Below are positions 1,037 to 48,659 of a DNA stretch of 64,000 bases, piece after piece. The translations under genes and the position numbers were made by a program. Positions within the stretch are counted from its first letter, which is position 1, and the number at the start of each line of letters is the position of its first letter. The stretch spans positions 124,001 through 188,000 of IMG/VR virus record IMGVR_UViG_3300011113_000640, one strand, 5' to 3'. Under the pieces are notes generated by a model that was not told the DNA's origin, did not search any database, and saw nothing but the letters and a program-made list of their open reading frames with translations.

Positions 1037-1585
1037 ATTCATGTGCAGGGCTACCAAGGCCGCATAACTAATCGCATGTGATTTCTTGAACACAAATCCT
1101 CGGCTGTCATCACCGTCCCACACTGAGGTAAACACTTGCTCCCAAGGCAGATTCTGTAGGTGTGCTTTGCCGGGTCTAATAATAGATATGAAAGCTGCCA
1201 TCCTAGGGATGCTGTCAGGGCGCATGGTTTTTAACAGTTCTGTATAGTTGCCCACGTGCACCAGTTGGCCTGCCCAATCCGAGTCGGTCCGTAGTCGCGA
1301 CCAAGGTGGTTCCAGGGCCAACATCGCTTCATAGTGTGATGGACTCTTTATCAGTTGATACACACTCATGTTCAGCAGATCGATCTTGAAATAACCCAAC
1401 TGTTCGGCTGTTTCGTAGTCTATGGCCGCACAGGCATTAACAGGATCCTGGGGTATGTCTGTGACATATATGCCACTGTTGTGACGACGCACCTGTCCTT
1501 GATTGATTTGTCGTGCTGGAACAGATTGTATCAATCGCAACAACTGATCTCTGTCAGCCAAGTCGATGTCAATGTCTGCGCTCAT
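1016..1585 (-). CDS. Minimal DNA polymerase III alpha (DnaE/family C) catalytic-core-like protein
   Basis: DnaE motifs in order (DIDID, HNSG, GYFKIDLL, RPG, FKKSHAISYA) within only 189 aa. Confidence 0.85.
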   Translation of the reverse strand: MSADIDIDLADRDQLLRLIQSVPARQINQGQVRRHNSGIYVTDIPQDPVNACAAIDYETAEQLGYFKIDLLNMSVYQLIKSPSHYEAMLALEPPWSRLRTDSDWAGQLVHVGNYTELLKTMRPDSIPRMAAFISIIRPGKAHLQNLPWEQVFTSVWDGDDSRGFVFKKSHAISYAALVALHMNLLNTPN

Positions 1586-2739
1586 TTTGAATATTTCCGC
1601 AAAATCTGATCAAGTTTCATTGGTCCTAGGGCTTCTATTGTGTTAGAAAAAAAGTAATTGTAGTTGTGTTCGACAAGATCTCGAGCCTGAGCACTGACCA
1701 AAATTTCAGGATGTTGGGCCATCCAGTTGATGGCCTCTGCACACATGCGATATCTTGCTATATGATCTTTTTCGTAATTATATGATTGTAACTGTTCTGG
1801 CAACAAATTCCAAGCAGTTTTAAATCCTAATTGGTTATACAACACGTCGGTGTTGGCCCCAGCAATGGGCCAAGGTATAGATTTAGTGATTGCACATTTA
1901 AGCAGTTTTTCAGTGATCCAGACTTCGTCATTTAACCATGTGGTTTCAGGAAATATCACACAATGATATGCAAGATATTCATCAATGACAAAGAAGCCCG
2001 GAGAAATTAATCCAAATTTTTGATCTATGCCAATTTGAATTGATCTATTATAATAGCCTTGAGTCTCTTGATCTATGTTGTCTTGATTGGCACAGTAATT
2101 ATTTACAAATTCTCTGAATTGGGTATCTTGTCTGGTTTCAAAAAAGCTGTCATTTAATTTTGATGCAGTGGTATAGTTATTTTGTCTTATAGTCATAGCA
2201 GTCCCCACAGTGGATTCTAATAGATCCATCATGTATTGACGCTGGGGTCTGTTCTGACCGTTGATATAGATCATGTTTTGCCTGCTGTTCTCAATTTTTT
2301 GATTGCTACGATCATAGTATTGTGGGTAAAACGGTCTTGTCAAGAAATCACGTGTGATCTGCGTGAATGGAAAAGGCAACAATTTGTCCGCACCAGGATA
2401 ACCGTCGACAACCAAGGCCGCAGTCAAAAAATAACAATTTTCTAATTCAACAAAAGCCCGATACATTTCTGGAGTGCAAACCTCAAGGTGATGTTGTCCT
2501 CCGTCAACAATTAAAAAGTCAAACTTGTCTGAGTTCACTGGATCCTTAGGCATGTGATAGAATCCAATATTGATGGCTCCAGCCTCCACTGACATGTTTT
2601 TACCAATTTTTATTTCACAATCAGCCCGATAATTATTGTGTTTATTCCTAGATTGATTGTATGCATAATAGTAATCAAACACCTGCAAGGATGAACTATT
2701 TTCTGAAGTATTATTGTCAAGGTGAACCAGTATTTTCAT
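1582..2739 (-). CDS. Putative glycosyltransferase-like protein (GT10-like ET...ITEK family)
   Basis: Motif FPET...WITEKLLK...GFKT; paralogous to 40147..41442; visibly AT-rich. Start placed at MKILVH. Confidence 0.5.
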   Translation of the reverse strand: MKILVHLDNNTSENSSSLQVFDYYYAYNQSRNKHNNYRADCEIKIGKNMSVEAGAINIGFYHMPKDPVNSDKFDFLIVDGGQHHLEVCTPEMYRAFVELENCYFLTAALVVDGYPGADKLLPFPFTQITRDFLTRPFYPQYYDRSNQKIENSRQNMIYINGQNRPQRQYMMDLLESTVGTAMTIRQNNYTTASKLNDSFFETRQDTQFREFVNNYCANQDNIDQETQGYYNRSIQIGIDQKFGLISPGFFVIDEYLAYHCVIFPETTWLNDEVWITEKLLKCAITKSIPWPIAGANTDVLYNQLGFKTAWNLLPEQLQSYNYEKDHIARYRMCAEAINWMAQHPEILVSAQARDLVEHNYNYFFSNTIEALGPMKLDQILRKYSK

Positions 2740-2744
2740 GACAG

Positions 2745-3419
2745 CTACCACCCAGCCTTGTTCAATATTTCACGCACATATTCTTGATCAGCCACATAGT
2801 CTGCAAATTTTTTCATCCACACTTCACTATCAATGTAAGGCCATATCATGGCAATCTGTGTAGCATCAAGTTCGCTTAGAAACTTTTGACCACTTTCACA
2901 ATTATAAACGATCCACGGACTGATACGGCCGGCAGTTACAGCATAGACCATGGCATTGGTGTTGCCATAACGCAGGCAATCTTCTGCTGGATGTCCAGAC
3001 GTCTCTGCCCAATCAATGCCAAATTCCATGGCACGAGCCAGGGCATCATTGACATTTTCCACCCGCAAATAGTCTATTAGGTATTCGGTATATATGGTAT
3101 CTCGACACCAATGATCAATCTTTTTGTTTTGTTTCAATACCCATTCTACAAATCTTGCAGGATTTACAGCACGGATGTCTACACAGTAGCGACCAAATTT
3201 TACAAAGGCACGATAGTAAGGACTTTCACAAAAGTCATCGTGCGTTTTTAACCGGGCGCTACCCTGGGTAAGCTCATAGAACTTTAAGTAGGACATGAAA
3301 CCAAGACGCACTCCTGCTTCGTCTTTTTCCATGCGACGACGTCGCGGTTCGCATGAATGTACCGCAAGACTGGACTCCTTCATGAAGTCCTTTTTACAAT
3401 ACTGACAGGTATAGGTCAT
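2745..3419 (-). CDS. Hypothetical protein with N-terminal zinc finger
   Basis: CQYC...H-x-C at the N-terminus; lies in the replication operon with overlapping start/stop codons. Confidence 0.7.
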   Translation of the reverse strand: MTYTCQYCKKDFMKESSLAVHSCEPRRRRMEKDEAGVRLGFMSYLKFYELTQGSARLKTHDDFCESPYYRAFVKFGRYCVDIRAVNPARFVEWVLKQNKKIDHWCRDTIYTEYLIDYLRVENVNDALARAMEFGIDWAETSGHPAEDCLRYGNTNAMVYAVTAGRISPWIVYNCESGQKFLSELDATQIAMIWPYIDSEVWMKKFADYVADQEYVREILNKAGW

Positions 3420-4399: not shown

Positions 4400-5857
4400 T
4401 TATTTCCAAGATAACTTTTCCTGGGTAAATGGATAGTTGGCTTCCTTATAGAAAGTCTTGCGTTTGGTTAGATGACGTTTGGCAAATCTACAGGTACTGG
4501 TCACATCCCAGATCTGCACATGGTCTTTGTCTTCGGCTTTTCTAATGCCGCGTCCAATTGATTGAATAACTCGCACAAAGCTCTTTCCTGGTTCCACCAA
4601 CACAAGATTAAAAATTCTAGGTATATTGATACCCACGGCAGCCACACCATAAGTGGCCACGATAATCTTGCCATCGGCTACAGCCACTTCGTCGTATTCA
4701 TCTTGTCTATCCTTGGCCTTGGTTGCACCCGATACAAACACCGCATCCTTGAGTTGTTCTACCAAGGCCTGTCCTGCGGCAATGCGATCCACCAACACAA
4801 GAGTATTGCCAGTGACATTGACTTGTCGCACTAGATCAGCAATGGTCTTGAGTCTGTCGGGCTCTTCTAACAGATACTTTAGCTCGCTTTGGTAGTTGGT
4901 GAACTCAGCATGGTCTTCTAGTTGTACTATGTTGACATGGCACTGGGCCAGCACACCTTGACTTTGCAACTCGCTGGCACTGAGTTTGCTGATCACAGGA
5001 CCCAGGCTTACCAACAAGCTCACACTTTCAAATTTTTCTTTGGGTATAGTTCCTGTGAGTCCCCAGCGTATAGGAATCCGACTCATTACACCAGTGAGTA
5101 GGGTTTTCAGTGCATCAGCCTTGGCCATGTGTACCTCATCCACAATCACGCACACCACACCTTCCAAGAATTCACCTATGGTGATCTCTGCTAGATCGTT
5201 CTTGGTATTCTTTAGTAACACGTTTAGACTTTGCCAGGTGCATATGGTGTGTTGACGTCCGAACTCTTTACGGTCGCCAAAGAACACGCCCACATCCAGG
5301 CCCATGTTGATGTAGTCTCGTTCTGTTTGCGTGACCAGGCTCTTGTTGGGCACAATCACTATGCTACGACCATAAGGTGTTATAGCATCAGATAAGGCAG
5401 CGGTCATCACTGTCTTGCCTGCTCCAGTGGCCACTTCTTGTAGACATTGTGGATTGGCCAGGAAGTTGTTGATGATTTCTACTTGATAGTCACGAAGCTT
5501 CATGGGCTCGCCCGCAGCAGGATGTCCTTTGGGCCAGGCTATGTGGCTGTAACTGTCCTCTGTGACCGGTGTAAAGTCAAACGTGGTCAAATAATCTCTT
5601 TGGTCGTCTAGGTCAATATCATAGTTGAACTTTTCTAATATGGGTATGATCTCGGGCAACAAGTTCACATAGGTGCTGCCACCCAACTGAAAGTAACTGA
5701 CTTTGCCATCCCAACGTCCTAGCCGCACTGCCGGCAAATATCTAGCATAGGGCACATCATATTTGAAGGCATTAACCAGACTACGACGTGCATCTAATTC
5801 AAGACCTTCAATCTTGATATTGACTTCGTCGCGTATGATTATTGTGGCTTTTTTCAT
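4400..5857 (-). CDS. uvsW: SF2 DNA helicase (UvsW-like)
   Basis: LRDYQ, ATGAGKT, DEVH, GLTGT and QSIGRGIR helicase motifs. Confidence 0.85.
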   Translation of the reverse strand: MKKATIIIRDEVNIKIEGLELDARRSLVNAFKYDVPYARYLPAVRLGRWDGKVSYFQLGGSTYVNLLPEIIPILEKFNYDIDLDDQRDYLTTFDFTPVTEDSYSHIAWPKGHPAAGEPMKLRDYQVEIINNFLANPQCLQEVATGAGKTVMTAALSDAITPYGRSIVIVPNKSLVTQTERDYINMGLDVGVFFGDRKEFGRQHTICTWQSLNVLLKNTKNDLAEITIGEFLEGVVCVIVDEVHMAKADALKTLLTGVMSRIPIRWGLTGTIPKEKFESVSLLVSLGPVISKLSASELQSQGVLAQCHVNIVQLEDHAEFTNYQSELKYLLEEPDRLKTIADLVRQVNVTGNTLVLVDRIAAGQALVEQLKDAVFVSGATKAKDRQDEYDEVAVADGKIIVATYGVAAVGINIPRIFNLVLVEPGKSFVRVIQSIGRGIRKAEDKDHVQIWDVTSTCRFAKRHLTKRKTFYKEANYPFTQEKLSWK

Positions 5858-5873
5858 AAAGTATCGATGAGAT

Positions 5874-6689
5874 TTAAATTTTATAAATTATTTTTTTCAT
5901 ATCTAAACTTGTCAAAGGAAAAATATTTAATTGATCACATTGAATTTCAAATTTTTGTTCTCGCAGAAGATATTGAACATAAGACTCATCAAAAATCGTA
6001 ATACAAGGACTCGGATGATCAAATTGGCTGTTTAAAATTTGATCGACCCACTGCTGACACCTAATTTGTGAATTATGAAATTGTTGAGCTTTAATAAATT
6101 TTTTTTGATTGTTCATAATAGTATCAATATCTGCTGTTAATTTTTTATCAACAATCTTGGCGCATTCGACGAGTTTTTCAAAAATATTTTCAAATATATC
6201 TTGGGTATCTAGTTTAAAACTAGATTTAATTTGTTTGTAGCTATCGATAGTCTTCCAGACATCTACGATCCAAAAAGAAACCCATTCTCTCAAAATCCAT
6301 CTCGGGATATCTTCATTGAGTGTGTTAAATTTGTAGTCCCAATTTTGAGACAATTTTAACTTTATTTCAGCGTTAATAATTTGTGTTCGCAAATAGGAAA
6401 TCAAATTACTCTTCTCCCATTTGACAAATTGATTGTTATAATAGTCCAAGCAATGATCATGAACTGGTGTAATTGTTATTACAGTGTCCTGTTCTGTCAA
6501 TACTGTATCCTCACAATGTCCATACCAGATCAGTTTTTTTGATTCATGATCATCTCTAAACAAATGGCTGCTGCCATCGTCACAGAATTCAAAATTGGTT
6601 TCTCTGTGCGAGCTTAAATCAGTGTAATTGTACAAGCAACGGGAAAAATAAGTACCGTAGCATCCAGGAGGAAATAGTATTTTAATCAT
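5874..6689 (-). CDS. Hypothetical AT-rich protein (possible P-loop/sulfotransferase-like fold)
   Basis: N-terminal beta-strand followed by PPGCYGT; has its own overlapping promoters. Confidence 0.55.
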   Translation of the reverse strand: MIKILFPPGCYGTYFSRCLYNYTDLSSHRETNFEFCDDGSSHLFRDDHESKKLIWYGHCEDTVLTEQDTVITITPVHDHCLDYYNNQFVKWEKSNLISYLRTQIINAEIKLKLSQNWDYKFNTLNEDIPRWILREWVSFWIVDVWKTIDSYKQIKSSFKLDTQDIFENIFEKLVECAKIVDKKLTADIDTIMNNQKKFIKAQQFHNSQIRCQQWVDQILNSQFDHPSPCITIFDESYVQYLLREQKFEIQCDQLNIFPLTSLDMKKIIYKI

Positions 6690-6693
6690 TTGT

Positions 6694-6727
6694 TATTTAC
6701 TATAACACATTTGTAACAAAGATGCAA
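6694..6727 (-). promoter_or_regulatory. Overlapping sigma70-type and late TAAATA promoters
   Basis: TTGCAT-N17-TATAGT overlapping TAAATA (6694-6699), 4 nt from the ATG. Confidence 0.55.
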
Positions 6728-6780
6728 AAAAACAGGCACCGAAGTGCCTGTTGTAAAATGGACAACGTCGCCGCTGTCCA
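6726..6780 (-). terminator. Tandem hairpins / intrinsic terminator after the ATPase gene
   Basis: TGGACAGCG-GCGA-CGTTGTCCA-TTTT followed by ACAGGCAC-TTCG-GTGCCTG-T7. Confidence 0.85.
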
Positions 6781-6791
6781 GGAGCTACCGA

Positions 6792-7811
6792 TTATGAGTT
6801 TTTCATGCAAGTGCTTGCAGCCAAGGCCTTCCAATTGTCAGCACTAACCTTGGTCAAGTCTGCTATCTTCAAGGCCATACGCAGGCTCATTTCACGCAAG
6901 CGGTCCTTGTTGGCATCCATGAAGTTGAGGATTTCGTCACCTTGTTCTGGGCTGAAATCATAGTCATTGAACAGTTGTCCTTGGCGGAAGATCTGCTTGA
7001 TACGCAAGAAACGATCACGCTGGGTGTTGAGTGTAAGATCCAAGAAGTGACAACGACTCTGCAAGGCCTCCAAATGGTCTTGCAATTTCTTGCTTTTGAG
7101 ATTGCTGAACTGCAAGTTGGTGATAAAGATGCAGGCACCTTTGAAGTCGAAACAGTCAGGCACACCTTCACGGCGCAACATGGCCGAATCTGAGTTCCAG
7201 TAAATTCTGCGTTTCTTGCCTGAGTCTAGGGCGGCCTTGAGAATGTTCAATGATAAGTCATCTTGGAACACCGAGTCGCAGTCGTCGAACACCAAGACAT
7301 TGTTGGGATCAGAGTGTTTGTAGAGAGTGCAGTAGAGACCAATTGGAGTCATGGCACCTTTGATCACTTCATACTTGATCTTGCGACCGCTGAGTTTGTC
7401 AAACAGACCAGACTTTTCCAATTGCTTTTCTACTCCGTAGCTCTTGCCCACTCCAGGAGGACCAACCACGATCATGGCTCTGACGTCACCTGCGATAGTG
7501 GCCTTGGTCATCTGATCCAGGATGTCAAATCGCTGTTCAATACGATCCATGACTTCATCATCGGTCTCCACCGGAACCTGAGCAGTCGCAGGGCGATCAG
7601 CAGTCATTGACTCGGTAGTAAACTCTACATCTTCGATGCTGTCTACTTTGACACGGACCACTTCGGGCACTTCTGGGCCAAAAAATCCATCTGCTTTCAC
7701 AGTTACATAGCCTCCCTTGGCGCCAGTTTGAAACCCTTTGACCAAGTTAAAGATCATACCGTTGACGGGTTGATTGCGATACGACCCATTTTTAACGAGA
7801 ATAGTTGACAT
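6792..7811 (-). CDS. AAA+ family ATPase (early gene)
   Basis: Walker A GPPGVGKS, Walker B VLVFDDCD, sensor FITN, arginine finger ALQSR. Confidence 0.85.
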   Translation of the reverse strand: MSTILVKNGSYRNQPVNGMIFNLVKGFQTGAKGGYVTVKADGFFGPEVPEVVRVKVDSIEDVEFTTESMTADRPATAQVPVETDDEVMDRIEQRFDILDQMTKATIAGDVRAMIVVGPPGVGKSYGVEKQLEKSGLFDKLSGRKIKYEVIKGAMTPIGLYCTLYKHSDPNNVLVFDDCDSVFQDDLSLNILKAALDSGKKRRIYWNSDSAMLRREGVPDCFDFKGACIFITNLQFSNLKSKKLQDHLEALQSRCHFLDLTLNTQRDRFLRIKQIFRQGQLFNDYDFSPEQGDEILNFMDANKDRLREMSLRMALKIADLTKVSADNWKALAASTCMKNS

Positions 7812-39192: not shown

Positions 39193-39540
39193 ATGACCAG
39201 ACCCGTGTGCCCTGACTGCAGGCAAAGACCTCGAGCTGTGTGTTATCACAAGTATGACAGGATTTACTATCGAAGTCGTTGCACACAATGTTTGCGCCGC
39301 TTGCAAGGCAAACCCGTGCCACGGATGCGTTGGCAGTTGGATGGATACAAAAAGAAAACAGTGTGCGATCGTTGTGGGTTTAGAGCCAAGTATTCAGCTC
39401 AATTACAGGTATTCCATATAGACGGAGATCTCAACAACAGCAGTTTGCGTAATTTAAAAACTATATGTCAAAACTGTGCTGTTGAAATCAAGAAATCGGA
39501 GCAACGTTGGGCCCCGGGAGATCTTGAACCAGACCTGTGA
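39193..39540 (+). CDS. Zinc-finger / HNH-like protein
   Basis: CxxC pairs; HIDGDLNN...NL..ICQNC; TAAATA 5 nt upstream. Confidence 0.7.
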   Translation: MTRPVCPDCRQRPRAVCYHKYDRIYYRSRCTQCLRRLQGKPVPRMRWQLDGYKKKTVCDRCGFRAKYSAQLQVFHIDGDLNNSSLRNLKTICQNCAVEIKKSEQRWAPGDLEPDL

Positions 39541-40150
39541 TTTGACGGTATAGGTGATCCAAGCTACCGTTGTTGTCTAGCACAGCATCAAATTCAGTGC
39601 CAATCCAGGCAGTTTCGCTGGCGTGTATGTTGTAGCGTTCCAGGGCGAGTTTGCTGGTGGTCCAAGTCATGTTGTGCGGACCAGAATTCACTGTTTCTGC
39701 CAAACTATACCAGGCAGGATCCGCGCCGCGATGCACTCTTATGACCCGGCCACCAGCACGTTTAATGGCCAAGATTTCATTGGGAAATCTGCAGTCGGAT
39801 ATGACCACATCATCATTGGTTTTACGCAGTTTATTTTCCAAGCTGGCAATCCAAGTATCATCGTGAAATCCTCTACGCACCACTTCAGTGCCCCAGTATT
39901 GTAACACCCAACGCGGAGTGAGATCGGGCATGCCCAGGCGTTCTGCCCACCATGGATCCACTTGTTCGCGCCAGGCCCTGCTGTGCTTGGTACGTCCTTC
40001 CAGCAGTTCACGATCCCAGCCAAACACTGAACTCACTGCATCTTTGAGTGTGTTGGCAAAACTTTCTCTGCGGAACTGATGTATGTTTACAAGATAGTCT
40101 GCTATGGTGTCTTTGCCGGCACCGATTAGTCCGCATACTCCAATTATCAT
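39488..40150 (-). CDS. Deoxynucleoside monophosphate kinase (T4 gp1-like)
   Basis: GLIGAGKDT, TPRWVLQYWGTE, SDCRFPNE and HASE motifs. Confidence 0.9.
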   Translation of the reverse strand: MIIGVCGLIGAGKDTIADYLVNIHQFRRESFANTLKDAVSSVFGWDRELLEGRTKHSRAWREQVDPWWAERLGMPDLTPRWVLQYWGTEVVRRGFHDDTWIASLENKLRKTNDDVVISDCRFPNEILAIKRAGGRVIRVHRGADPAWYSLAETVNSGPHNMTWTTSKLALERYNIHASETAWIGTEFDAVLDNNGSLDHLYRQITGLVQDLPGPNVAPIS

Positions 40151-41442
40151 AATTTTTTTCCAAAATAAAAAGAAGATCCCCACAATTGAGTTACATCATC
40201 ACAGATCAAATCGTGCCTGCGACAAAAATTTTCCAGTTGGAGTTGATTCTTTTCAAACAACTCAATGAATTTTTGATAATTGTGTTCAACATCCTGCGCA
40301 ATATATTTGGCATATCTGGCTATGTTTTTGTGGAAACTAACAGCATTTTCGACCACGGCATCTAGTCTAATTTCTGACCAAGACCCGATATGTTCAACAT
40401 AATGTCTTTGTATTTCTTGTTGCAAGCTCGCGGGCAGGGTATCAATTTGATCTAGCTCCAGTTGATCTGGCCACGAATCTCTCTTGAATTGTTGGTAAAA
40501 ATTTCTCCAGGATTTCTGACTCTGTAAATTTTCAAAAAATCCAACTTTACCAGATTGTTGTGAGTAATGCAGAAAATTTTCTTTGTCAGGGTCATCATAG
40601 TTTGGTATATCCATATAATCTTCAAATGTGCGGAATCCTAATTCGCGTAAAGTTGTCAGAGTATTCAATTCCCCGGCCATAACAAACGGTCTGTGATTGG
40701 CCATGCTCAACCAAATTTTTTCAGTCAGCCAGGTGTTGGAAAATGGGCGGTCAAAATCTGTTTCGCTTATAATTTGGAATACAGTATCGCCATACGCACT
40801 TTGATTGATATGGGCCCAGGCCTCAGGAGTACCAAAATACTTGTCAAATTGTCTCTGTGAGGTTTGAAAAAATGTTTCCTGCTCATCTTTGGTCAGATCA
40901 GACAAAACCAGTCTGACTGAATCATATTCTTCTGGTTTGACCATGAATGACCACGATAAGTGTTGCGCAATTGGTGAATCCAATAATTTAAATAACAATC
41001 TACTTCTGTGAATTTTATCAGGTTTGCCGACCATGAACAAAATCTTTGTTTTTGTAGAGTTCCAGTTATCCATCGTGATACAGGTTTTTCTAACACTGAT
41101 ACTGTGATATAATCTGTATAGCGGATCATCTACATACAAAATTTCTGCTACATGATCAAACTGCAAATTGAATGGTTTATAATACCTATTGAGCGTCAAC
41201 AGTATTTTTTTAAACTTGCAGGTTAACTGACTTAGAAATTCTTGAAATTGTTTTTGCCAATAAGGTTCAGCAGATTCACTTATGTAAATAATCAATATGG
41301 GCGGCAAGTTTGTTTGAGTGACCAATCTTGACAGCTCTTTATCTAAAATTGTTTGCACCTGCTGACTGATAAATTTGGAATCGGTGGTGTTTGAAAAAAA
41401 TGACAGTGAAGTCAAAGACAGCGTATGAAAATTTAATCCCAT
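40147..41442 (-). CDS. Putative glycosyltransferase-like protein (GT10-like family) with inserted WPD module
   Basis: IISET...LTEKIW...RPFVMAG...LGFRTF; paralog of 1582..2739. Confidence 0.5.
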   Translation of the reverse strand: MGLNFHTLSLTSLSFFSNTTDSKFISQQVQTILDKELSRLVTQTNLPPILIIYISESAEPYWQKQFQEFLSQLTCKFKKILLTLNRYYKPFNLQFDHVAEILYVDDPLYRLYHSISVRKTCITMDNWNSTKTKILFMVGKPDKIHRSRLLFKLLDSPIAQHLSWSFMVKPEEYDSVRLVLSDLTKDEQETFFQTSQRQFDKYFGTPEAWAHINQSAYGDTVFQIISETDFDRPFSNTWLTEKIWLSMANHRPFVMAGELNTLTTLRELGFRTFEDYMDIPNYDDPDKENFLHYSQQSGKVGFFENLQSQKSWRNFYQQFKRDSWPDQLELDQIDTLPASLQQEIQRHYVEHIGSWSEIRLDAVVENAVSFHKNIARYAKYIAQDVEHNYQKFIELFEKNQLQLENFCRRHDLICDDVTQLWGSSFYFGKKL

Positions 41443-41445
41443 GAA

Positions 41446-41970
41446 TTACTTTAACTCCTTTACGTTTAAGTGTCGGAGTGTGGCCTGCAACATGTCAATC
41501 TGTCTACGGCAGTCTTCGAGTGCATGATGGCTGGTAGGAGGCTTGGGCAGGCCGGGCCACAGGCTGTACACCGTCCTGGCGTCACGCACATTGTAGAACT
41601 GCCAAGGCAGGCTTTTGCCATAGCTCTTGTAGGCATGTTCCAAGATGTTCATGTCATAGGTAGGACCATTGGCCCAAATAAACTTGTGTTGCCAGGCCAG
41701 TTTGTAAAGACTGTCCAAGGCCTTGTCCAAGGGCACCCGTCCTTCTTCGCAGAATGCTTCTGCCTGTGCTTCTTTCTGCGTTGACCACCACTGTACTGTG
41801 CCATCTTCTATGGCACGAGTTTCTTGACTTTCAAGGGTAATACGAGCATAGTAGCAACGATCATAGTAGCCTGTGCCAAATGGATCAAAACTCTGTGCCG
41901 CAATGGTCAAAATAGTGGCATCCGGGCCAGTGGCCAGGCCTTCTATGTCGATCATCAAGGAAGTGCTCAT
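41446..41970 (-). CDS. DEDDh 3'-5' exonuclease (Rv2179c-like)
   Basis: MIDIEGL, WANG..YD, RDART and HHALED motifs. Confidence 0.85.
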   Translation of the reverse strand: MSTSLMIDIEGLATGPDATILTIAAQSFDPFGTGYYDRCYYARITLESQETRAIEDGTVQWWSTQKEAQAEAFCEEGRVPLDKALDSLYKLAWQHKFIWANGPTYDMNILEHAYKSYGKSLPWQFYNVRDARTVYSLWPGLPKPPTSHHALEDCRRQIDMLQATLRHLNVKELK

Positions 41971-41976
41971 GCTGAT

Positions 41977-42005
41977 AGTATAACATGAATTTTGATATTA
42001 GTCTA
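41977..42005 (-). promoter_or_regulatory. Sigma70-type promoter, probably leaderless
   Basis: TAGACT-N17-TATACT with extended -10; ATG 6 nt downstream. Confidence 0.7.
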
Positions 42006-42028
42006 CAAAATTTTTTGTTGAATCAATG

Positions 42029-42676
42029 TTATTTTGGCAAAAATGTGTGTATCACAATGGCTTGTTTGTTTGTAAACCCGTTGGCAATAAAATTATCAGT
42101 GTCGTGTAGATTGTTGCTGTTCCAATATATAATGCTGTTGTGCTTCCATTGATATATCCCTTGTATTGTGAGTTTTTTTACCAGAGATTCCGAATTATGG
42201 CTTAGATGGGATTTATAAATTTTAAATGCCGAATTGTCTTCTTCGATTTGATCTTTTTCAAAACGAGTCTTGAGTGATTGGTTGCTGTCACTGCTCTGAT
42301 CAAATACTATGGTGCTCACACGCTCAACTAAATCTTTGTTGTGATCTACGCTGTAGGGTATCAGCATAGATAGTGCTGGCTTGCGATCAGTAAATCCATC
42401 GCAGTGATAGGCGTCTGTGTGTATTCCCCAGGGTCTTGTTTCATTCAAAAACATACCAAAAATAAGACGCAGGTCTTGACCAAAAAGTTTTTGAATACTA
42501 GAAAAAATATTTCTCTGGAACCAAAAATTATAAGAATTTTTTTCGTCTACACCATGACAGTCATTGTCAAGTATTTTAATTGCAGGTATGTTTGAGAAAA
42601 CATCGACCCACGACTGGATTTCATCAGTTTCAAACACATCAAACAGTTGTCCTGCTGCAGGATTCAAAGATTGCAT
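42029..42676 (-). CDS. Putative 2OG-Fe(II) oxygenase-like protein
   Basis: HTD (HxD) plus a distal His in WNSNNLH, spaced as in the double-stranded beta-helix fold. Confidence 0.5.
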   Translation of the reverse strand: MQSLNPAAGQLFDVFETDEIQSWVDVFSNIPAIKILDNDCHGVDEKNSYNFWFQRNIFSSIQKLFGQDLRLIFGMFLNETRPWGIHTDAYHCDGFTDRKPALSMLIPYSVDHNKDLVERVSTIVFDQSSDSNQSLKTRFEKDQIEEDNSAFKIYKSHLSHNSESLVKKLTIQGIYQWKHNSIIYWNSNNLHDTDNFIANGFTNKQAIVIHTFLPK

Positions 42677-43095
42677 AATAGATACTGTTTAAAAACATCA
42701 GATTCTGTGAAATCAAAGTTGACAGATCCATTGAATCCTATGTATGATGTCGTTATCTCTCTGGCATCGTCGGTGCACAGTTTGATTTTTTTATGCATGA
42801 AACTTTCATTTAGTTCAAATCCATCAAAATCAACTTTGACGATCTTGATATAAACATCAGCTGTGATTTTGCCTTCGCTGTCAACGACAGTGTCGGTGTT
42901 GGAATTTTTGCCGTAAAATTTAAATGCGATCTGTGTTGGCAAAGTTATATCAAATTGCAGTCGTGCTCTATGGTCATGTCCAGGCAAGACAAGTATGGAC
43001 TCTTGGTCGTGAGAGACCTCCAAAGTCATGTGCCGGCCGTCAACTAGGCCAAACTCAAAATCAAATCCAATTTTACATGTATTTAATTCAGACAT
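42664..43095 (-). CDS. Hypothetical beta-rich protein coupled to the radical SAM gene
   Basis: 143 aa; overlaps both neighbours. Confidence 0.6.
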   Translation of the reverse strand: MSELNTCKIGFDFEFGLVDGRHMTLEVSHDQESILVLPGHDHRARLQFDITLPTQIAFKFYGKNSNTDTVVDSEGKITADVYIKIVKVDFDGFELNESFMHKKIKLCTDDAREITTSYIGFNGSVNFDFTESDVFKQYLLCNL

Positions 43096-44533
43096 TTATC
43101 AATGTTTCCAATAAAAAATGATTGTCAAGATTATCTGCCACTGTGTAACCTAATTCGCGACTGACTGCGTTTAATTCTTTGACCCATTTGGCCCGTACCG
43201 CCGGAGTGCTATCAATTGACTCATTGATCCATAAACTAGGTTGTGATCCAATTATACGCACTCCCAACTCTTCTTTGTTCTCGTCAAGATAGGTATTTGG
43301 AAATATTCCCAATGTTCCGCCCCATTGTATTACCAAAATGTCTCGATATTCAACGTGGTCACGCAACCACTGTTTTATAAAATCTATGTCTTTTTCGGTT
43401 TCGTTGACATACCCAACAATATTTAATAACAACAATCCAATGTTGTTTTTTTTGGCCTGGGCCAAATGAAAATCAATGGCTTCGTTGGAAAACTTTTTAC
43501 CAATTTCATATCTGATGTGTTGATTTAGATTTTCAATTCCCACTGCAAGTTTTTCGGCCCCACTTAATCGCAACAGATCCCATTCACGCTCAGATGCAGT
43601 GCTGACATTCCTAAAAATATAATAGCCAGACCACCTAAACTTGACTTCAGACTTTTGATTGAAATCTGCCAAAAGTTCTAGTAGTCTCATAAACTCTTTT
43701 TGATTTCCGTTGGTCAAAGAATCCTGGAATTTGAAAGTGCTGATATTGTATCTTTGGTATTGCGCCAGCATTTCGTTAAAAATATCGTCGGCGGTTCTCC
43801 ATTGAAACCGTTTCCAATTGGCGATGTAATCACAAAATTTACACTGTCTCACACAACCTCGACTGCCAATCAACGGCATAACCTTTTTGTCGTACACATC
43901 AAAAATATAATCATCATAATTGGGCATAGGCAAAGATCGCAGTTCGTCTTTGCTGAGCTCTTGCCATTCCAATGAATTTATTCCTGCATAGTTGGAGTTG
44001 CCAATCAACAACTCATATAGACTGTTTTCGCCATCGCCCCTGACATGATAATCAAAAAATTTAAGCCGCAACATGTCATCTATGTATTGAGATTTACCTG
44101 TGAATGTTGCTAGGCAACCAGCGCCGCCTACAATAATTTTAACGTCAGGATCTAATTTTTTGATATAATATGCCATCCATTTTGCTGAGTGTTGGCACAC
44201 ATAACTAAACAAGCTGAGTGCCACAAACTTTGGTGACCAACTCAAGATCTGCTTGGCTGCGCTGATAAAGATTTGTCTAAGCACCTCACTGGTTTCTGGA
44301 TCAGCATGCCCATCAAAGAAAAATCGTATCAATTGTTCTTTTTGAGGATGATTGCCGACGTACTGATAAATTTCAACGTTTAAATCCACAGCTAAACAAC
44401 TATGCCCAGATTTTTCAATTATGGGTTTTAGAGCCGCAGGAGCCATTAAAGGTATAGAACTGTCAGTCCAAGGAACTGTGCATATCACTACATCTTTATG
44501 ATTTGAATTAGGATTGTCAAGGCATTGCCACAT
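43088..44533 (-). CDS. B12-binding radical SAM enzyme (class B methyltransferase-like)
   Basis: IIVGGAG, VRGDGE and SRGCVRQCKFC motifs; start reassigned to MWQCLD at 44533. Confidence 0.85.
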   Translation of the reverse strand: MWQCLDNPNSNHKDVVICTVPWTDSSIPLMAPAALKPIIEKSGHSCLAVDLNVEIYQYVGNHPQKEQLIRFFFDGHADPETSEVLRQIFISAAKQILSWSPKFVALSLFSYVCQHSAKWMAYYIKKLDPDVKIIVGGAGCLATFTGKSQYIDDMLRLKFFDYHVRGDGENSLYELLIGNSNYAGINSLEWQELSKDELRSLPMPNYDDYIFDVYDKKVMPLIGSRGCVRQCKFCDYIANWKRFQWRTADDIFNEMLAQYQRYNISTFKFQDSLTNGNQKEFMRLLELLADFNQKSEVKFRWSGYYIFRNVSTASEREWDLLRLSGAEKLAVGIENLNQHIRYEIGKKFSNEAIDFHLAQAKKNNIGLLLLNIVGYVNETEKDIDFIKQWLRDHVEYRDILVIQWGGTLGIFPNTYLDENKEELGVRIIGSQPSLWINESIDSTPAVRAKWVKELNAVSRELGYTVADNLDNHFLLETLINV

Positions 44534-44539
44534 TAAATC

Positions 44540-44568
44540 AGTGTAACAAAGTTTATTAAAAAAGTCAA
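44540..44568 (-). promoter_or_regulatory. Sigma70-type promoter, probably leaderless
   Basis: TTGACT-N17-TACACT with extended -10; ATG 6 nt downstream. Confidence 0.7.
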
Positions 44569-44574
44569 TGATTA

Positions 44575-45345
44575 CTAACCAATTACCCAGGTAAGAGGTT
44601 GGCTGGCATCCACATAGTTCTTCAAATCTTCTATGCATCGATCCATGGCGGCCTGGGCTTCGCCTTTCATGGCTGTGCCATTCAGGCTGCTGCCACCTTG
44701 AGGTCCAGCATATTGTCCAAACTTTTCTCTGGCTTCGCCAATGATCATTTTACAGTTGGCTGTCATGTAGTCGCGGATCCATTGGCGTATTTGGTAGTCG
44801 CTGAGTAGATTGAATTCGGGTTTGAGATTGTAGGTCCAAAGCAGGACATTTTCACCAGTGCCTTTGGGATCACGGATCAGTTGCAATTTCTTTGTGACCG
44901 GATTCCAGGTATAGTTCATGTAGGCACCAAACATCTTGCCGGCCTGTTCCACATACTGGCTGTAGAAGTCATAAGTAGCAAGTCCGCCTGCCACGTTGAA
45001 GTTCATCAAATATACGTTTAAACTGGCCTGACTGAACGGATCAAAGTTACTGGCAAAGGGCCCAGTGCTGTCACCAAAAGTTCTGCGGAATATTTGACGC
45101 ACAGTTATCACTTCTTGTGGCAAGTCATAGATATTCACATTGGTTACTAGTTCTAAAAAGCTGTAGCTTTCTTCGTAGGCATTTTGTGCCCTTTGACGGT
45201 AAACACCAATGGTGCGTTGATAAGCGGCTTCGTAGTGTTCGGCATCCAGCTCGATGTCGATGATTTGATCGCCCAGTTGCAGGCGCACATAATCTATAAG
45301 TTCTTGTTTTAATGTTTCAGTGCTGGATTGACTTTCTAGTGCCAT
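44575..45345 (-). CDS. Neck protein (gp13-like)
   Basis: YVRLQLG..IIDIEL, WIRDY..A..K, and KF...GPQGG..LNG motifs. Confidence 0.8.
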   Translation of the reverse strand: MALESQSSTETLKQELIDYVRLQLGDQIIDIELDAEHYEAAYQRTIGVYRQRAQNAYEESYSFLELVTNVNIYDLPQEVITVRQIFRRTFGDSTGPFASNFDPFSQASLNVYLMNFNVAGGLATYDFYSQYVEQAGKMFGAYMNYTWNPVTKKLQLIRDPKGTGENVLLWTYNLKPEFNLLSDYQIRQWIRDYMTANCKMIIGEAREKFGQYAGPQGGSSLNGTAMKGEAQAAMDRCIEDLKNYVDASQPLTWVIG

Positions 45346-45383
45346 AGGAACTCCGTGTTCCTGTATTTATCTGCTTACCAGCG

Positions 45384-46553
45384 TCAAGAACCTTTAGTAA
45401 AAAAGTCCTGGCACGCACCCTGGCGCGACAGGTCATTGGTCACACAGTGTATGCCGCAGTCCCAGAAATATTTGTGTCTAAAAGGCATCACATGAACTTC
45501 TATACCATGTCTAGCACAGGCTGCTTCAACTTGATCATTGTGGGTACTGACCACTATGTTTTTGGGGTCTACTATGAGTATGTTTACATCAAATACAGTT
45601 TCTGATACCTGCCCGACCCACTCATCAAAGTAGTGATCCACCATGTTTATGAGATTGTTGTCCTGCTCAAAGCCGGGCATGAACCACCGTCCTTTGTTGC
45701 GTTTCATGCTAGTTTCAAACTCACGCATGTGTGCATAGTTGCTGGGTGGCAAGTAGACCACTTCCCAATCAGGAAATGTGTCGGTATAGGTAGGCACATC
45801 ATTGAGACTGATAATCAAGCCAGGCGTAATAGGACAGTACACTGCATCACCGTGGCCGCCGGCATTGACCACATGATTGCGTGTGCCAGGAAACAACTCA
45901 TTGACCTGGGCCAGTATGGCCTGCTTGTCGTCGTGATAGGTCTGTGTGGCAAAGTACAAGTCTTGACCAATGCGACTTACAAAACAACCATTGACAAAAT
46001 CCAGGTCGGTGTAGACAATCTCGTTGCCTTGAGACTCGATGTCATCCAGCACATGCTTGTAAAATTTTAATTTGGCGTCGAGGTGTGCCTGATCTACCAA
46101 ATTAAACTTGGCAAATTTTTCTTGCACTTCCTGGGCGAATTCTGGCAAGGCCTCGTAAAAATCTGTTGGTCTAACAAAATCTGGCCACCAGCTCTGCTTG
46201 TTTTGTCTATAAAACACACTCCAGGCATGACTTGCATTTGGTATTTTTGGAATCCAAAAACGATCTTGAATCATTAAAAAATAGTCACGTGGCGCTGTGG
46301 GTGGTTGGACCCACTTGCCTTCAACAAATAATTCGTCCAGATCGTCAGGAAATTCAGGACGAAAAACTTTGACTCCAAATCGGTTTGTCAGCAGACTGAT
46401 TAGACGTTGATAATCTTCTTCGGTCTCCTGAGCCAGTAGTTCGAATCTGTTGCGTGTTTCTGCGTTTTTGATCCAGTGGTAGAATTCTGGAGGGTATGTG
46501 CGACCCACCAGGCATACTTGCAACGGATCCCAGTGTTGATAAACATTGTACAT
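45384..46553 (-). CDS. Amidinotransferase (glycine/inosamine-phosphate amidinotransferase-like, pentein fold)
   Basis: WDPLQVCLVG, PRD, GHGD and C-terminal GIHCVT (catalytic Cys). Confidence 0.85.
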   Translation of the reverse strand: MYNVYQHWDPLQVCLVGRTYPPEFYHWIKNAETRNRFELLAQETEEDYQRLISLLTNRFGVKVFRPEFPDDLDELFVEGKWVQPPTAPRDYFLMIQDRFWIPKIPNASHAWSVFYRQNKQSWWPDFVRPTDFYEALPEFAQEVQEKFAKFNLVDQAHLDAKLKFYKHVLDDIESQGNEIVYTDLDFVNGCFVSRIGQDLYFATQTYHDDKQAILAQVNELFPGTRNHVVNAGGHGDAVYCPITPGLIISLNDVPTYTDTFPDWEVVYLPPSNYAHMREFETSMKRNKGRWFMPGFEQDNNLINMVDHYFDEWVGQVSETVFDVNILIVDPKNIVVSTHNDQVEAACARHGIEVHVMPFRHKYFWDCGIHCVTNDLSRQGACQDFFTKGS

Positions 46554-48008: not shown

Positions 48009-48074
48009 GAGTTTAAGTATACTATAAGTTGATTTAACGGTCAATCTGGAATTATGAACATAAATATCTATACT

Positions 48075-48659
48075 ATGTTTTATGTATATACCTATTTAAG
48101 AGAAGACGGCTCCCCGTATTATGTTGGCAAGGGTAGTGGAGATCGTGCCTACAAAAAATGGAATAAAAAAGACATTAAACCACCAAAAGATCAAACTCGT
48201 ATTATTATAGTAGAAGATAATTTAGATGAACAATCTGCATTTGATTTAGAAATTAAATTGATTGCCCAATATGGACGCAAAGATTTAGGCACAGGCATAC
48301 TACACAACAAAACAAACGGAGGTGAAGGATCGTCTGGGCATAAAATAGGTGGATGGCAATGGAGTGCAGAATCTAGAGAAAAACGCAAAGGTGCCGGCAA
48401 TCCAGCGTTTGGAAAAGAACAGAGTGTAGAAATTATACAGAAAAAAGTAGAAAGCTGGCTTAAGACCACTGGAGGTAAGCAAAATCCAGAATGGATAGAA
48501 AAACGTGCTAATGCTAGAAGGGGTAAAAAACAACCAGAGGGCACCGGAGAGAAAATTGCTGCAAAATTAAGAGGTAGAAAACAATCACCAGAGGCAGTAG
48601 CTAAACGAGCGGAGTCGTGTAGGTTATCGTGGGCTGGTAAAAAAGCACTAAATATTTGA
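48075..48659 (+). mobile_element. Free-standing GIY-YIG homing endonuclease with NUMOD3-like repeats
   Basis: FYVY...YYVGKG..R, E..LI..YGR and NKTNGGEG; basic C-terminal repeats (NPAFGK, RGKKQ, RGRKQS); A-rich composition. Confidence 0.85.

Follow-up and report, generated by a model that had tools for sequence, protein, structure and literature searches.

A small protein module of uncultured giant phages is shared by unrelated enzymes

Introduction

Promiscuous small domains are how cells organise many enzymes around one scaffold or substrate. The dockerin modules of cellulosomes are small and non-catalytic, are appended to many unrelated enzymes, and tether these through cohesins to one scaffold. 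RiPP recognition elements (PqqD-like RRE) are fused to diverse peptide-tailoring enzymes, among them radical SAM enzymes and methyltransferases, and recruit them to one substrate. The cargo-loading peptides of bacterial microcompartments and encapsulins are short shared tags at the N- or C-terminus of unrelated enzymes in one genome which direct them to a common protein shell; encapsulin shells share the fold of HK97-type phage capsids. Carbohydrate-binding modules (CBMs) are position-independent, sometimes tandem, aromatic-rich accessory modules on glycan-active enzymes. The ubiquitin-binding motif (UBM, Pfam PF14377) of the Y-family DNA polymerases Pol iota and REV1 is a unit of about 30 residues built as helix, Leu-Pro turn, helix. 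Peptides of comparable length can also be inserted into unrelated proteins by selfish DNA, as with the Rickettsia palindromic elements.

The window analysed here is a stretch of 64,000 nucleotides, positions 124,001 to 188,000 of the IMG/VR virus record IMGVR_UViG_3300011113_000640, which belongs to a genome of 320 kb. A first-pass annotation of the window, made from the sequence alone, proposed that one module of about 35 residues is inserted into two unrelated enzymes, labelled a GT10-like protein and an amidinotransferase, and that it is a mobile docking or targeting tag. We have examined both proposals. The observation is confirmed and turns out to be larger than reported, whereas the interpretation is supported only in part.

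The two segments are copies of one module

The features considered are collected in Table 1. Both peptides are where the first-pass annotation placed them, and they are diverged copies of a module of about 40-45 residues with the consensus W..FY..IKDPSWPDC..E.DF..LP.HIQ.EC(I).VFGY.P.

Table 1. Coordinates of the features in the window
Feature	Coordinates	Strand	Residues	Description
Carrier 1	40147..41442	-	431 aa	GT-B-like putative glycosyltransferase
Module copy 1	40393..40515	-	310-350	Inside an insertion of ~75 residues flanked by low-confidence linkers; segment at residues 312-348
Peptide in copy 1	40509-40411	-	W312-I344	Peptide noted in the first-pass annotation
B12-binding radical SAM enzyme	43088..44638	-		Lies between the two carriers
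Carrier 2	45384..46553	-	389 aa	Amidinotransferase (pentein) fold
Module copy 2	46107..46229	-	109-149	Diverged copy; opens a helical excursion (about residues 105-176) between two beta-strands of the pentein fold; segment at residues 111-147
Peptide in copy 2	46223-46119	-	W111-V145	Peptide noted in the first-pass annotation
Module-less ORF	1582..2751	-	389 aa	Used as a paralog in the first-pass annotation

A BLASTP comparison of the two carriers aligns only this stretch, with 14/44 identities and E=0.004 for the single comparison, which is marginal on its own. It is the family context that makes the resemblance significant. A profile built from 94 module segments of 92 proteins, taken only from carrier families unrelated to either window protein, scores the segment of the 431-aa protein 42.7 bits (E 2.4e-12 against all ORFs of the genome) and that of carrier 2 17.7 bits (E 1.6e-4), while the maxima over 3000 shuffles of each protein were 6.2 and 9.3 bits, respectively. 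Over the independent module profiles used the scores were 42.7-47.8 bits for copy 1 and 17.7-23.6 bits for copy 2.

The claim that the module is an insertion holds, but on better comparators than the one first used. The ORF at 1582..2751 had been taken as a paralog of the 431-aa protein lacking the segment. It has gaps at the module columns of the alignment and no module hit by HMM, but it is only a weak relative of the 431-aa protein (BLASTP E=0.003 over 43 residues). Two adjacent Stf0-like sulfotransferase paralogs of the same genome (38% identity, E 3e-94) differ by presence or absence of the module. Amidinotransferase homologs from marine viruses and from Synechococcus phage S-SCSM2R lack it, while the homolog P0142 (34% identity) has a canonical copy at the same site, as have ADI-like IMG/VR proteins. 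In relatives of the 431-aa protein the module sits at the C-terminus rather than internally.

The two carrier proteins

The label amidinotransferase is supported for carrier 2. Its structure aligns with VIA-align Z scores of 19-20.3 over 269-280 residues to SxtG, StrB1, AGAT and HsvA, Foldseek gives E 2e-11, and a profile search hits the same PDB chains. The C-terminal sequence GIHCVT has the G-x-H-C-x-T motif with the catalytic Cys; G367, H369, C370 and T372 are invariant in an alignment of 33 homologs, and the region aligns to the C-termini of HsvA, AGAT, StrB1 and SxtG. Amidino-group transfer and the substrate were not assayed. The protein is very highly conserved among related phages, with more than 2350 homologs, the best at 79-86% identity, and the module residues are invariant across the 33 aligned homologs, as conserved as the enzyme core.

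The label GT10-like is not established for the 431-aa protein. It has no PHROG hit and no Pfam hit at E<=0.1 apart from a spurious Gam hit, and only one AFDB cluster named fucosyltransferase was found, at E 6e-3 and TM 0.30. VIA-align Z scores of 9-10 over 250-285 residues were obtained to UDP-GlcNAc 2-epimerase and UGTs, only slightly above the stated background of 7-8 for this method, and the Foldseek hits in the PDB have E>=0.056; these values leave membership of the GT-B fold undecided, and we use GT-B-like for a moderate resemblance only. The protein has 8 homologs, and copy 1 is conserved in the proteins P0122-P0126. It belongs to the commonest carrier family: it is 27% identical (E 5e-33) to P0134, a member of a family of 55 which usually has the module at the C-terminus.

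Homologs of the radical SAM enzyme lying between the two carriers (Pfam Radical_SAM plus B12-binding) sit directly next to module-bearing methyltransferases in other jumbo-phage contigs. It is 29% identical (E 2e-51) to the product of positions 5887-7431 of one such contig (L011), which abuts a module-bearing MTS-type methyltransferase.

Distribution of the module

The genome holds four copies in four different protein families: the GT-B-like protein, the amidinotransferase, an SGNH/GDSL hydrolase (weak Pfam match) and a Stf0-like sulfotransferase (recognised by language-model features). The first-pass annotation had named a search with an HMM of the segments as the test of its proposal, with hits in many unrelated enzyme families as support, and this search came out positive. 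Among 1.84 billion cluster representatives 541 carry the module at E<=1e-3 and 28 at E<=1e-10. The top 149 fall into 41 BLAST components once the module is masked, and at least 12 unrelated families are represented, including PrmC/MTS-type, FkbM and CmcI-like methyltransferases, radical SAM enzymes, GDSL hydrolases, DUF6492, Amidohydro_2 and Asp/Arg hydroxylases. The module is found at N-termini, at C-termini, in internal loops or in tandem. Among the top 149 it is internal in the GDSL, amidinotransferase, radical SAM and other families, as in both window proteins, and it is thus not a strictly terminal tag.

It was found only in uncultured jumbo-phage contigs. All of 30 IMG/VR pattern hits carry the whole module, against 0 of 12 hits in 185,579 species genomes, and 6 of 6 jumbo-phage records are hit by the profile, against 0 of 406 bacterial genomes. 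It was not found in cultured relatives. No Pfam, NCBIfam or PHROG model covers it; all hits of such models lie in the catalytic domains and stand-alone module segments give none. For example, phrog_35227 aligns to the carrier P0132 only from residue 94, after the module.

Predicted structure and conservation

Unrelated structures in the two segments had been named in advance as an outcome that would count against a common module. Both window copies are predicted with the same helix-loop-helix-helix pattern, so neither this outcome nor the absence of further instances was observed. In the 431-aa protein the helices are at residues 312-317, 330-335 and 338-349, with pLDDT below 50, and in carrier 2 at 109-118, 129-135 and 137-174, with pLDDT 77-92. 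The isolated module was not modelled, and the ESM Atlas model is poor. The layout is helix 1 (W..FY..IK), a conserved loop (DPSWPDC), helix 2 (E.DF..L), and a Leu-Pro turn into helix 3 (P..IQ.EC...F). The residues Y8, W16, P17, L29, P30 and E36 are at least 97% conserved across hundreds of divergent proteins. The mean net charge is -3.5 and 93% of copies are acidic, which argues against nucleic-acid binding.

The four copies in the genome share only 36-54% nucleotide identity, and 3-6 identical residues per pair use different codons. The folding energy (MFE) is within about 1 sd of shuffled sequences, i.e., there is no excess hairpin stability.

What the module might do

In our reading the two segments are copies of an autonomous, previously undescribed mini-domain, which we call the WPDC-LP module. 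The analysis shows that, as far as searched, it is confined to uncultured T4-like jumbo phages, many from fresh water, that it has been shuffled by insertion and terminal fusion into many unrelated, mostly tailoring enzymes (glycosyl-, methyl-, sulfo- and amidino-transferases, SGNH esterases, radical SAM enzymes, hydroxylases and amidohydrolases), and that it is held under purifying selection at the protein level. What we infer beyond this, with a probability of roughly 0.55, is that the module is non-catalytic and works as an interaction handle. In this view an acidic, aromatic-rich helical surface, whose second half mimics the UBM of Pol iota and REV1, binds one shared partner, most likely a protein and less likely a shared glycan or carrier. 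Binding would bring different enzymes to the same place or substrate, and tandem copies would add avidity. The carriers share no cofactor.

The mobile module in unrelated tailoring enzymes, as proposed in the first-pass annotation, is thus shown, while its docking to a common scaffold, carrier or substrate remains an inference. No partner was found and no experiment exists. Only some of the tailoring enzymes of the genome carry the module; the second sulfotransferase, for example, lacks it. The carrier genes are scattered among core replication genes such as gp32 and UvsX rather than lying in one operon. The conserved hydrophobic residues may simply be the core of a three-helix bundle rather than a binding face. 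In the amidinotransferase family the Pro of WPD, otherwise 98% conserved, varies, and that copy may have become an integral structural element.

An alternative we regard as unlikely, but which deserves attention, is that the module recognises a shared substrate, like a CBM, and binds a glycan, glycolipid or carrier-linked sugar which all these enzymes decorate. Many carriers are typical sugar or glycan tailoring enzymes: a Stf0-like carbohydrate sulfotransferase next to an APS-kinase-like gene, SGNH/GDSL esterases, FkbM and CmcI/rhamnosyl-O-methyltransferase-like enzymes, DUF6492 and GT-B-like proteins, and amidinotransferases of the StrB1 (inosamine-phosphate amidinotransferase) type. The conserved aromatic residues (W4, F7, Y8, W16, F25), the tandem copies and the variable position are also typical of CBMs. 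However, PrmC/HemK-like methyltransferases, the second-largest carrier family among the top 149 hits, and Amidohydro_2 enzymes are not obviously glycan enzymes, and the carriers have no signal peptides, with N-terminal modules starting at residue 3, so any glycan would have to be cytoplasmic. Somewhat less likely still is a structural or regulatory accessory without a common partner, for example a self-association element or a stabilising or redox-sensing cap which happens to be portable. There are two partly conserved cysteines (C19 in 90% and C37 in 59% of top hits), tandem copies exist, and in carrier 2 the module is predicted with good confidence, continues into a long helix of the enzyme and is conserved like the catalytic core. 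But both cysteines are missing in the two window copies and the second is often replaced by Ile, so there is no obligatory Cys pair. The linkers around the module in the 431-aa protein are of low confidence and variable, and a purely structural cap would not be expected at N-termini, C-termini and internal loops of more than 12 different folds.

That the peptide is a by-product of a selfish DNA element inserted in frame would fit short peptides of similar length at permissive surface sites of unrelated proteins in one genome. This reading is effectively refuted by the DNA comparison, and the conservation of specific residues, also within the 33 aligned homologs of carrier 2, speaks against it. 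A chance resemblance between two low-information stretches could be suspected from the pairwise E-value and the modest score of copy 2, but it is refuted by the independent profile scores, by the canonical copy at the same site in distant amidinotransferase homologs and by the 541 database hits.

A more far-reaching possibility, which we consider unlikely although the data do not exclude it, is that uncultured jumbo phages run an enzyme-recruitment system in which a virus-specific, UBM-like docking module tethers a changing set of tailoring enzymes to one phage or host partner. The partner could be a cryptic beta-grasp (ubiquitin-like) protein or a virion or assembly scaffold, and such a virus-built tailoring hub would decorate the virion or the surface of the infected cell. 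It would be a prokaryotic-virus counterpart of ubiquitin-reader or dockerin logic.

Small modules shared by many enzymes are known from cells; this is a candidate of this kind that appears confined to viruses, absent from the Pfam, NCBIfam and PHROGs copies searched but present in hundreds of protein clusters from widespread freshwater jumbo phages. Knowledge of its partner would show what the many auxiliary tailoring enzymes of these phages act on, a long-standing blank in jumbo-phage biology, and the module could also yield a compact 40-residue tag for enzyme co-localisation. In practical terms it can now be annotated, and its presence flags otherwise unannotatable phage ORFs as members of one functional set.

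Comparison with described modules

The second half of the module shares with UBMs the signature F-x2-L-P-x2-(I/V)-Q-x-E-(L/I/C)-x3-(W/F). The UBM positions which contact ubiquitin, F, L-P, V/I, E, L and W/F (PMC8468184), coincide with module positions 25, 29-30, 33, 36, 37 and 41: F25 (77%), L29 (97%), P30 (99%), I33 (89%), E36 (97%), C/I/L37 and F/H/Y41 line up with Pol iota F688, L691, P692, V695, E698, L699 and W703, and predicted helices flank the Leu-Pro. Both are helix, Leu-Pro turn, helix units of about 30 residues, both are acidic and both also occur in tandem. The similarity is, however, below significance: the best PDB hit is UBM1 of Pol iota at E 0.04, the others are at 0.37-0.66, Pfam gave no UBM hit for ten module segments at E<=10, and PF14377 gave no match in the genome at E<=10. 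UBMs are eukaryotic and bind ubiquitin, whereas no ubiquitin (PF00240) or ThiS (PF02597) match was detected in this genome; a divergent beta-grasp protein of the phage or the host cannot be excluded, and binding was not measured. The module also has an extra conserved N-terminal helix and the DPSWPDC loop, and convergence on a simple helix-turn-helix cannot be excluded.

The dockerin-cohesin modules follow the logic proposed here, but there is no sequence or predicted structural similarity and there are no Ca-binding F-hand repeats; the setting is cytoplasmic phage enzymes, and no scaffold protein with repeated receptor domains was identified. RREs are winged-helix domains of about 90 residues with a beta-sheet, found in cellular gene clusters, whereas the module is helical, about 40 residues long and virus-restricted, and no precursor peptide is known. 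The encapsulation and cargo-loading peptides are single amphipathic helices or short motifs of 10-20 residues and strictly terminal; the module is longer, has three helices, and is often internal and sometimes in tandem. Nearly all CBMs are beta-rich, no CBM family in Pfam matches the helical and acidic module, and several carriers are not glycan enzymes. The Rickettsia palindromic elements insert peptides of similar length into unrelated proteins, but here there is no DNA-level repeat or palindrome, and there is strong residue-specific conservation.

The genome and the two segments

The window covers bases 124001-188000 of a single virus record of 320,541 bp, which CheckV estimates to be 93% complete. 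The virus is a T4-like jumbo myovirus, and its tail sheath of 1118 aa is 39-45% identical to the tail sheaths of Pseudomonas phage PA5oct and Agrobacterium phage Atu_ph07. Near-identical DNA occurs in lake, river and other freshwater metagenomes and viromes. The positions of the features discussed below are collected in the table.

Positions of the genes and module copies discussed in the text (G000:C1 denotes the coordinates of the whole virus record, L001 a locus on the same record)
Feature	Position	Strand	Size
Carrier with moderate GT-B resemblance	window 40147-41442	-	431 aa
Carrier with amidinotransferase (pentein) fold	window 45384-46553	-	389 aa
B12-binding radical SAM enzyme, between the two carriers	window 43088-44638	-	516 aa
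ORF used as comparator in the first-pass annotation	window 1582-2751		
dNMP-kinase-like gene (39488-40183) and Rv2179c-like 3'-5' exoribonuclease (41446-41970), flanking the 431-aa carrier	window 39488-41970	-	
ORF with a GIY-YIG-like N-terminus	window 48054-48659	+	201 aa
Module copy outside the window	G000:C1:7253-7363	+	
Module copy outside the window	G000:C1:8010-8129	-	
Two tandem Stf0-like sulfotransferase paralogs, one with and one without the module (the latter at 5078-6355)	G000:C1:5078-7729 (L001:1079-3730)		
APS-kinase-like/cytidylyltransferase-like fusion	L001:4610-5446		
ORF resembling a solute-binding protein	L001:6750-7763 (G000:C1:10749-11762)	-	337 aa

The first-pass annotation stated that one short module is present in two unrelated enzymes of the window, and this observation is confirmed: both peptides are found exactly where it placed them. 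A BLASTP comparison of the two proteins aligns nothing but this stretch (14/44 identities, E=0.004). When a regular expression and a small HMM were run over all six-frame ORFs of the genome, four copies were found and not two, the other two lying outside the window.

A search with a profile for hits in many unrelated enzyme families had been named in advance as the way to test the idea. We used a profile of the four copies and their close homologs to search 1.84 billion cluster representatives, which gave 541 proteins at E<=1e-3 and 28 at E<=1e-10. The consensus is W..FY..IKDPSWPDC..E.DF..LP.HIQ.EC(I).VFGY.P, and positions Y8, W16, P17, L29, P30 and E36 are at least 97% conserved among the top hits. 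The profile was then rebuilt using only families unrelated to both window proteins (94 segments from 92 proteins). With this profile the copy in the 431-aa protein scores 42.7 bits and the copy in the 389-aa protein 17.7 bits, while the maxima in 3000 shuffles of each protein were 6.2 and 9.3. The amidinotransferase copy is the most diverged. A homolog search restricted to the module region returned only 5 candidates.

The carrier proteins

The carriers are unrelated enzymes. The 389-aa protein has an amidinotransferase (pentein) fold: VIA-align gives Z 19-20 to SxtG, StrB1, AGAT and HsvA, Foldseek gives E 2e-11, a profile hits the same PDB chains, and a GIHC motif is invariant in the 33 aligned homologs. 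This enzyme is extraordinarily conserved for an auxiliary phage gene, with more than 2350 database homologs of which the best 120 are 79-86% identical, and it sits among structural genes; its function in these phages must be important. The 431-aa protein has no family hit and shows only a moderate GT-B resemblance (Z 9-10; Foldseek E>=0.056; one AFDB cluster named fucosyltransferase at E 6e-3), and the label "GT10-like" given to it in the first-pass annotation is therefore unproven. Both genes flanking it belong to nucleotide metabolism, which is not what a glycan island would contain.

The third carrier has a weak GDSL/SGNH match (Lipase_GDSL_2, E 1.6e-4, below Pfam's cut-off). The fourth looks like a Stf0-like sulfotransferase by language-model features (scores 0.95-0.97; all ten best named clusters share that family or clan). 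Near the tandem sulfotransferase paralogs lie the APS-kinase-like/cytidylyltransferase-like fusion and a P-loop protein, which suggests that the phage makes or uses an activated sulfate donor. The 337-aa ORF has a signal-peptide-like N-terminus and looks, by eye, like a periplasmic solute-binding protein of the TctC/Bug type, although it was not scanned against any family library; this is unusual cargo for a phage and a possible hint at a proteobacterial host. The 201-aa ORF, which lies on the opposite strand to its neighbours, has an N-terminal YVYTY...YYVGKG that looks like a GIY-YIG homing endonuclease motif, a resemblance that was left untested, followed by a lysine- and arginine-rich tail.

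Among the top 149 database hits (P0128-P0276), masking the module and clustering the rest gives 41 components, of which at least 12 are multi-member families. Pfam places them in MTS/Eco57I (PrmC-like) methyltransferases, radical SAM enzymes, GDSL hydrolases, DUF6492, Amidohydro_2, Asp/Arg hydroxylases, FkbM and CmcI-like methyltransferases, and others. The largest family (55 representatives, about 400 aa) is related to the 431-aa protein (27% identity, E 5e-33) and carries the module at its C-terminus. One of the 149 carriers matched Pfam P9_TM (minor capsid protein P9 transmembrane helices, E 4.5e-8). We could not locate this protein again, and it was not among the carriers that were re-scanned; if the match is real, the module may also occur on a virion-associated protein or outside tailed phages. 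The metagenomic protein P0130 (94 aa) consists of an N-terminal module followed by a coiled coil which matches the valyl-tRNA synthetase tRNA-binding arm (E 3e-9), and the module is therefore also fused to non-enzymatic helical segments.

Insertion and selection of the module

The module is an inserted, portable unit. The two adjacent sulfotransferase paralogs of this genome are 38% identical (E 3e-94) and differ by a roughly 50-residue gap exactly at the module. The amidinotransferase homolog P0142, a database protein (34% identity, E 3e-72), has a canonical module at the same site as the 389-aa protein, and so do ADI-like proteins of 377-386 aa on IMG/VR contigs, whereas homologs from marine virus AG-345-D19 have other sequence there and the enzyme of S-SCSM2R lacks the whole excursion. 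The comparator used in the first-pass annotation is only a weak relative (E=0.003). In the 431-aa family the module precedes a conserved helical segment (IAQDVEHNYQ), while in the database proteins P0128 and P0134 it follows that segment. Across all hits the module is N-terminal (from residue 3), C-terminal, internal or tandem, the last as in P0129, P0135 and P0215.

The module is selected as protein and not as DNA. The four copies in this genome share 36-54% nucleotide identity, in each pair 3-6 identical residues are encoded by different codons, and none of the copies folds more stably than its shuffles. This rules out an in-frame repeat like the RPE. In the alignment of 33 sequences of the 389-aa family, the module residues W111, F114, R116, Q117, K119, R128, P129, D131, F132, Y133 and P137 are invariant.

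Distribution

No stretch of the module alignment was conserved enough to search for related loci directly, and a degenerate DNA pattern for KDPSWPDC was used instead. It hit 30 IMG/VR loci, all 30 of which carry the full module, and 12 loci in one genome each of 185,579 prokaryote species, none of which carries it. The module profile finds the module in 6 of 6 jumbo-phage records tested, with 1-4 copies each; it should be noted that these records are contigs of 49-210 kb estimated to be 14-58% complete. It finds none in the 5 cultured or marine relatives examined (PA5oct, Atu_ph07, Vibrio phage 2.275.O, S-SCSM2R and marine virus AG-345-D19) and none in 406 bacterial genomes. A tblastn search with one canonical module against 50,697 cultured-phage records gave no match at E<=0.1. 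The expectation that a similar motif would be present in cyanophage proteins was therefore not borne out.

No Pfam, NCBIfam or PHROG model covers the module. Literature searches on the motif, on amidinotransferases in jumbo phages and on targeting peptides in phages found nothing relevant and no description of it. Within these limits it is an undescribed, virus-restricted domain family.

Possible function of the module

That the two segments might adopt unrelated structures had been put forward beforehand as an outcome which would refute a common module. AlphaFold2 predicts the same pattern in both copies: a helix over W..FY, a loop over K..WPD, a short helix over DF..L, and then a helix starting at the LP. 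The pLDDT is 77-92 in the amidinotransferase but below 50, with floppy flanks, in the 431-aa protein, and an ESM Atlas search with a stand-alone module gave only unnamed viral clusters and a poor model. The module is acidic, with a mean net charge of -3.5 and 93% of copies negative, which argues against nucleic-acid binding, and this reading was dropped. Zinc-finger and EF-hand readings of the conserved Cys, His and Asp residues were considered and also dropped, as no ligand set is consistently conserved. The carriers share no cofactor; what they share is being tailoring enzymes.

Taken together, the best reading is a small autonomous interaction domain which brings diverse enzymes to one partner. 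The first-pass annotation had proposed a mobile docking or targeting tag recruiting tailoring enzymes to a common scaffold, carrier or substrate, and this interpretation is partly supported: the mobility of the module and the breadth of families carrying it are demonstrated by the data, while the docking function is our inference and was not tested. A protein partner is somewhat more likely than a shared glycan or carrier, but glycan binding is still a serious rival because so many carriers are of sugar-tailoring types. No partner was identified, and only some of the tailoring enzymes of the genome carry the module. In the amidinotransferase lineage the hallmark Pro of WPD has become variable, and that copy may have been domesticated as a structural part of the enzyme.

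The gene neighbourhoods gave no candidate partner either. Around 30 IMG/VR carriers the neighbours are ordinary core genes (gp32-like, RecA/UvsX-like) or other auxiliary enzymes, and the one recurrent association is a B12-binding radical SAM enzyme. A homolog of the window's copy (29% identity, E 2e-51) sits immediately downstream of a module-bearing MTS-type methyltransferase on another jumbo-phage contig (L011), and members of the same ORF cluster occur in five further loci. This could be a conserved functional pairing.

Comparison with known modules

Promiscuous accessory or docking modules are already known, and what is new here is a further module that is not homologous to them. The finding is of considerable interest as it stands, and would be of much more if a common partner is found. 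[quoted passage not shown] This is a lead and not membership, since the Pfam UBM model does not match the module and no ubiquitin or ThiS-like gene is detectable in the genome. The residues that contact ubiquitin in those UBMs are F, L-P, V, E, L and W (PMC8468184), and they coincide with the conserved module positions 25, 29-30, 33, 36, 37 and 41.
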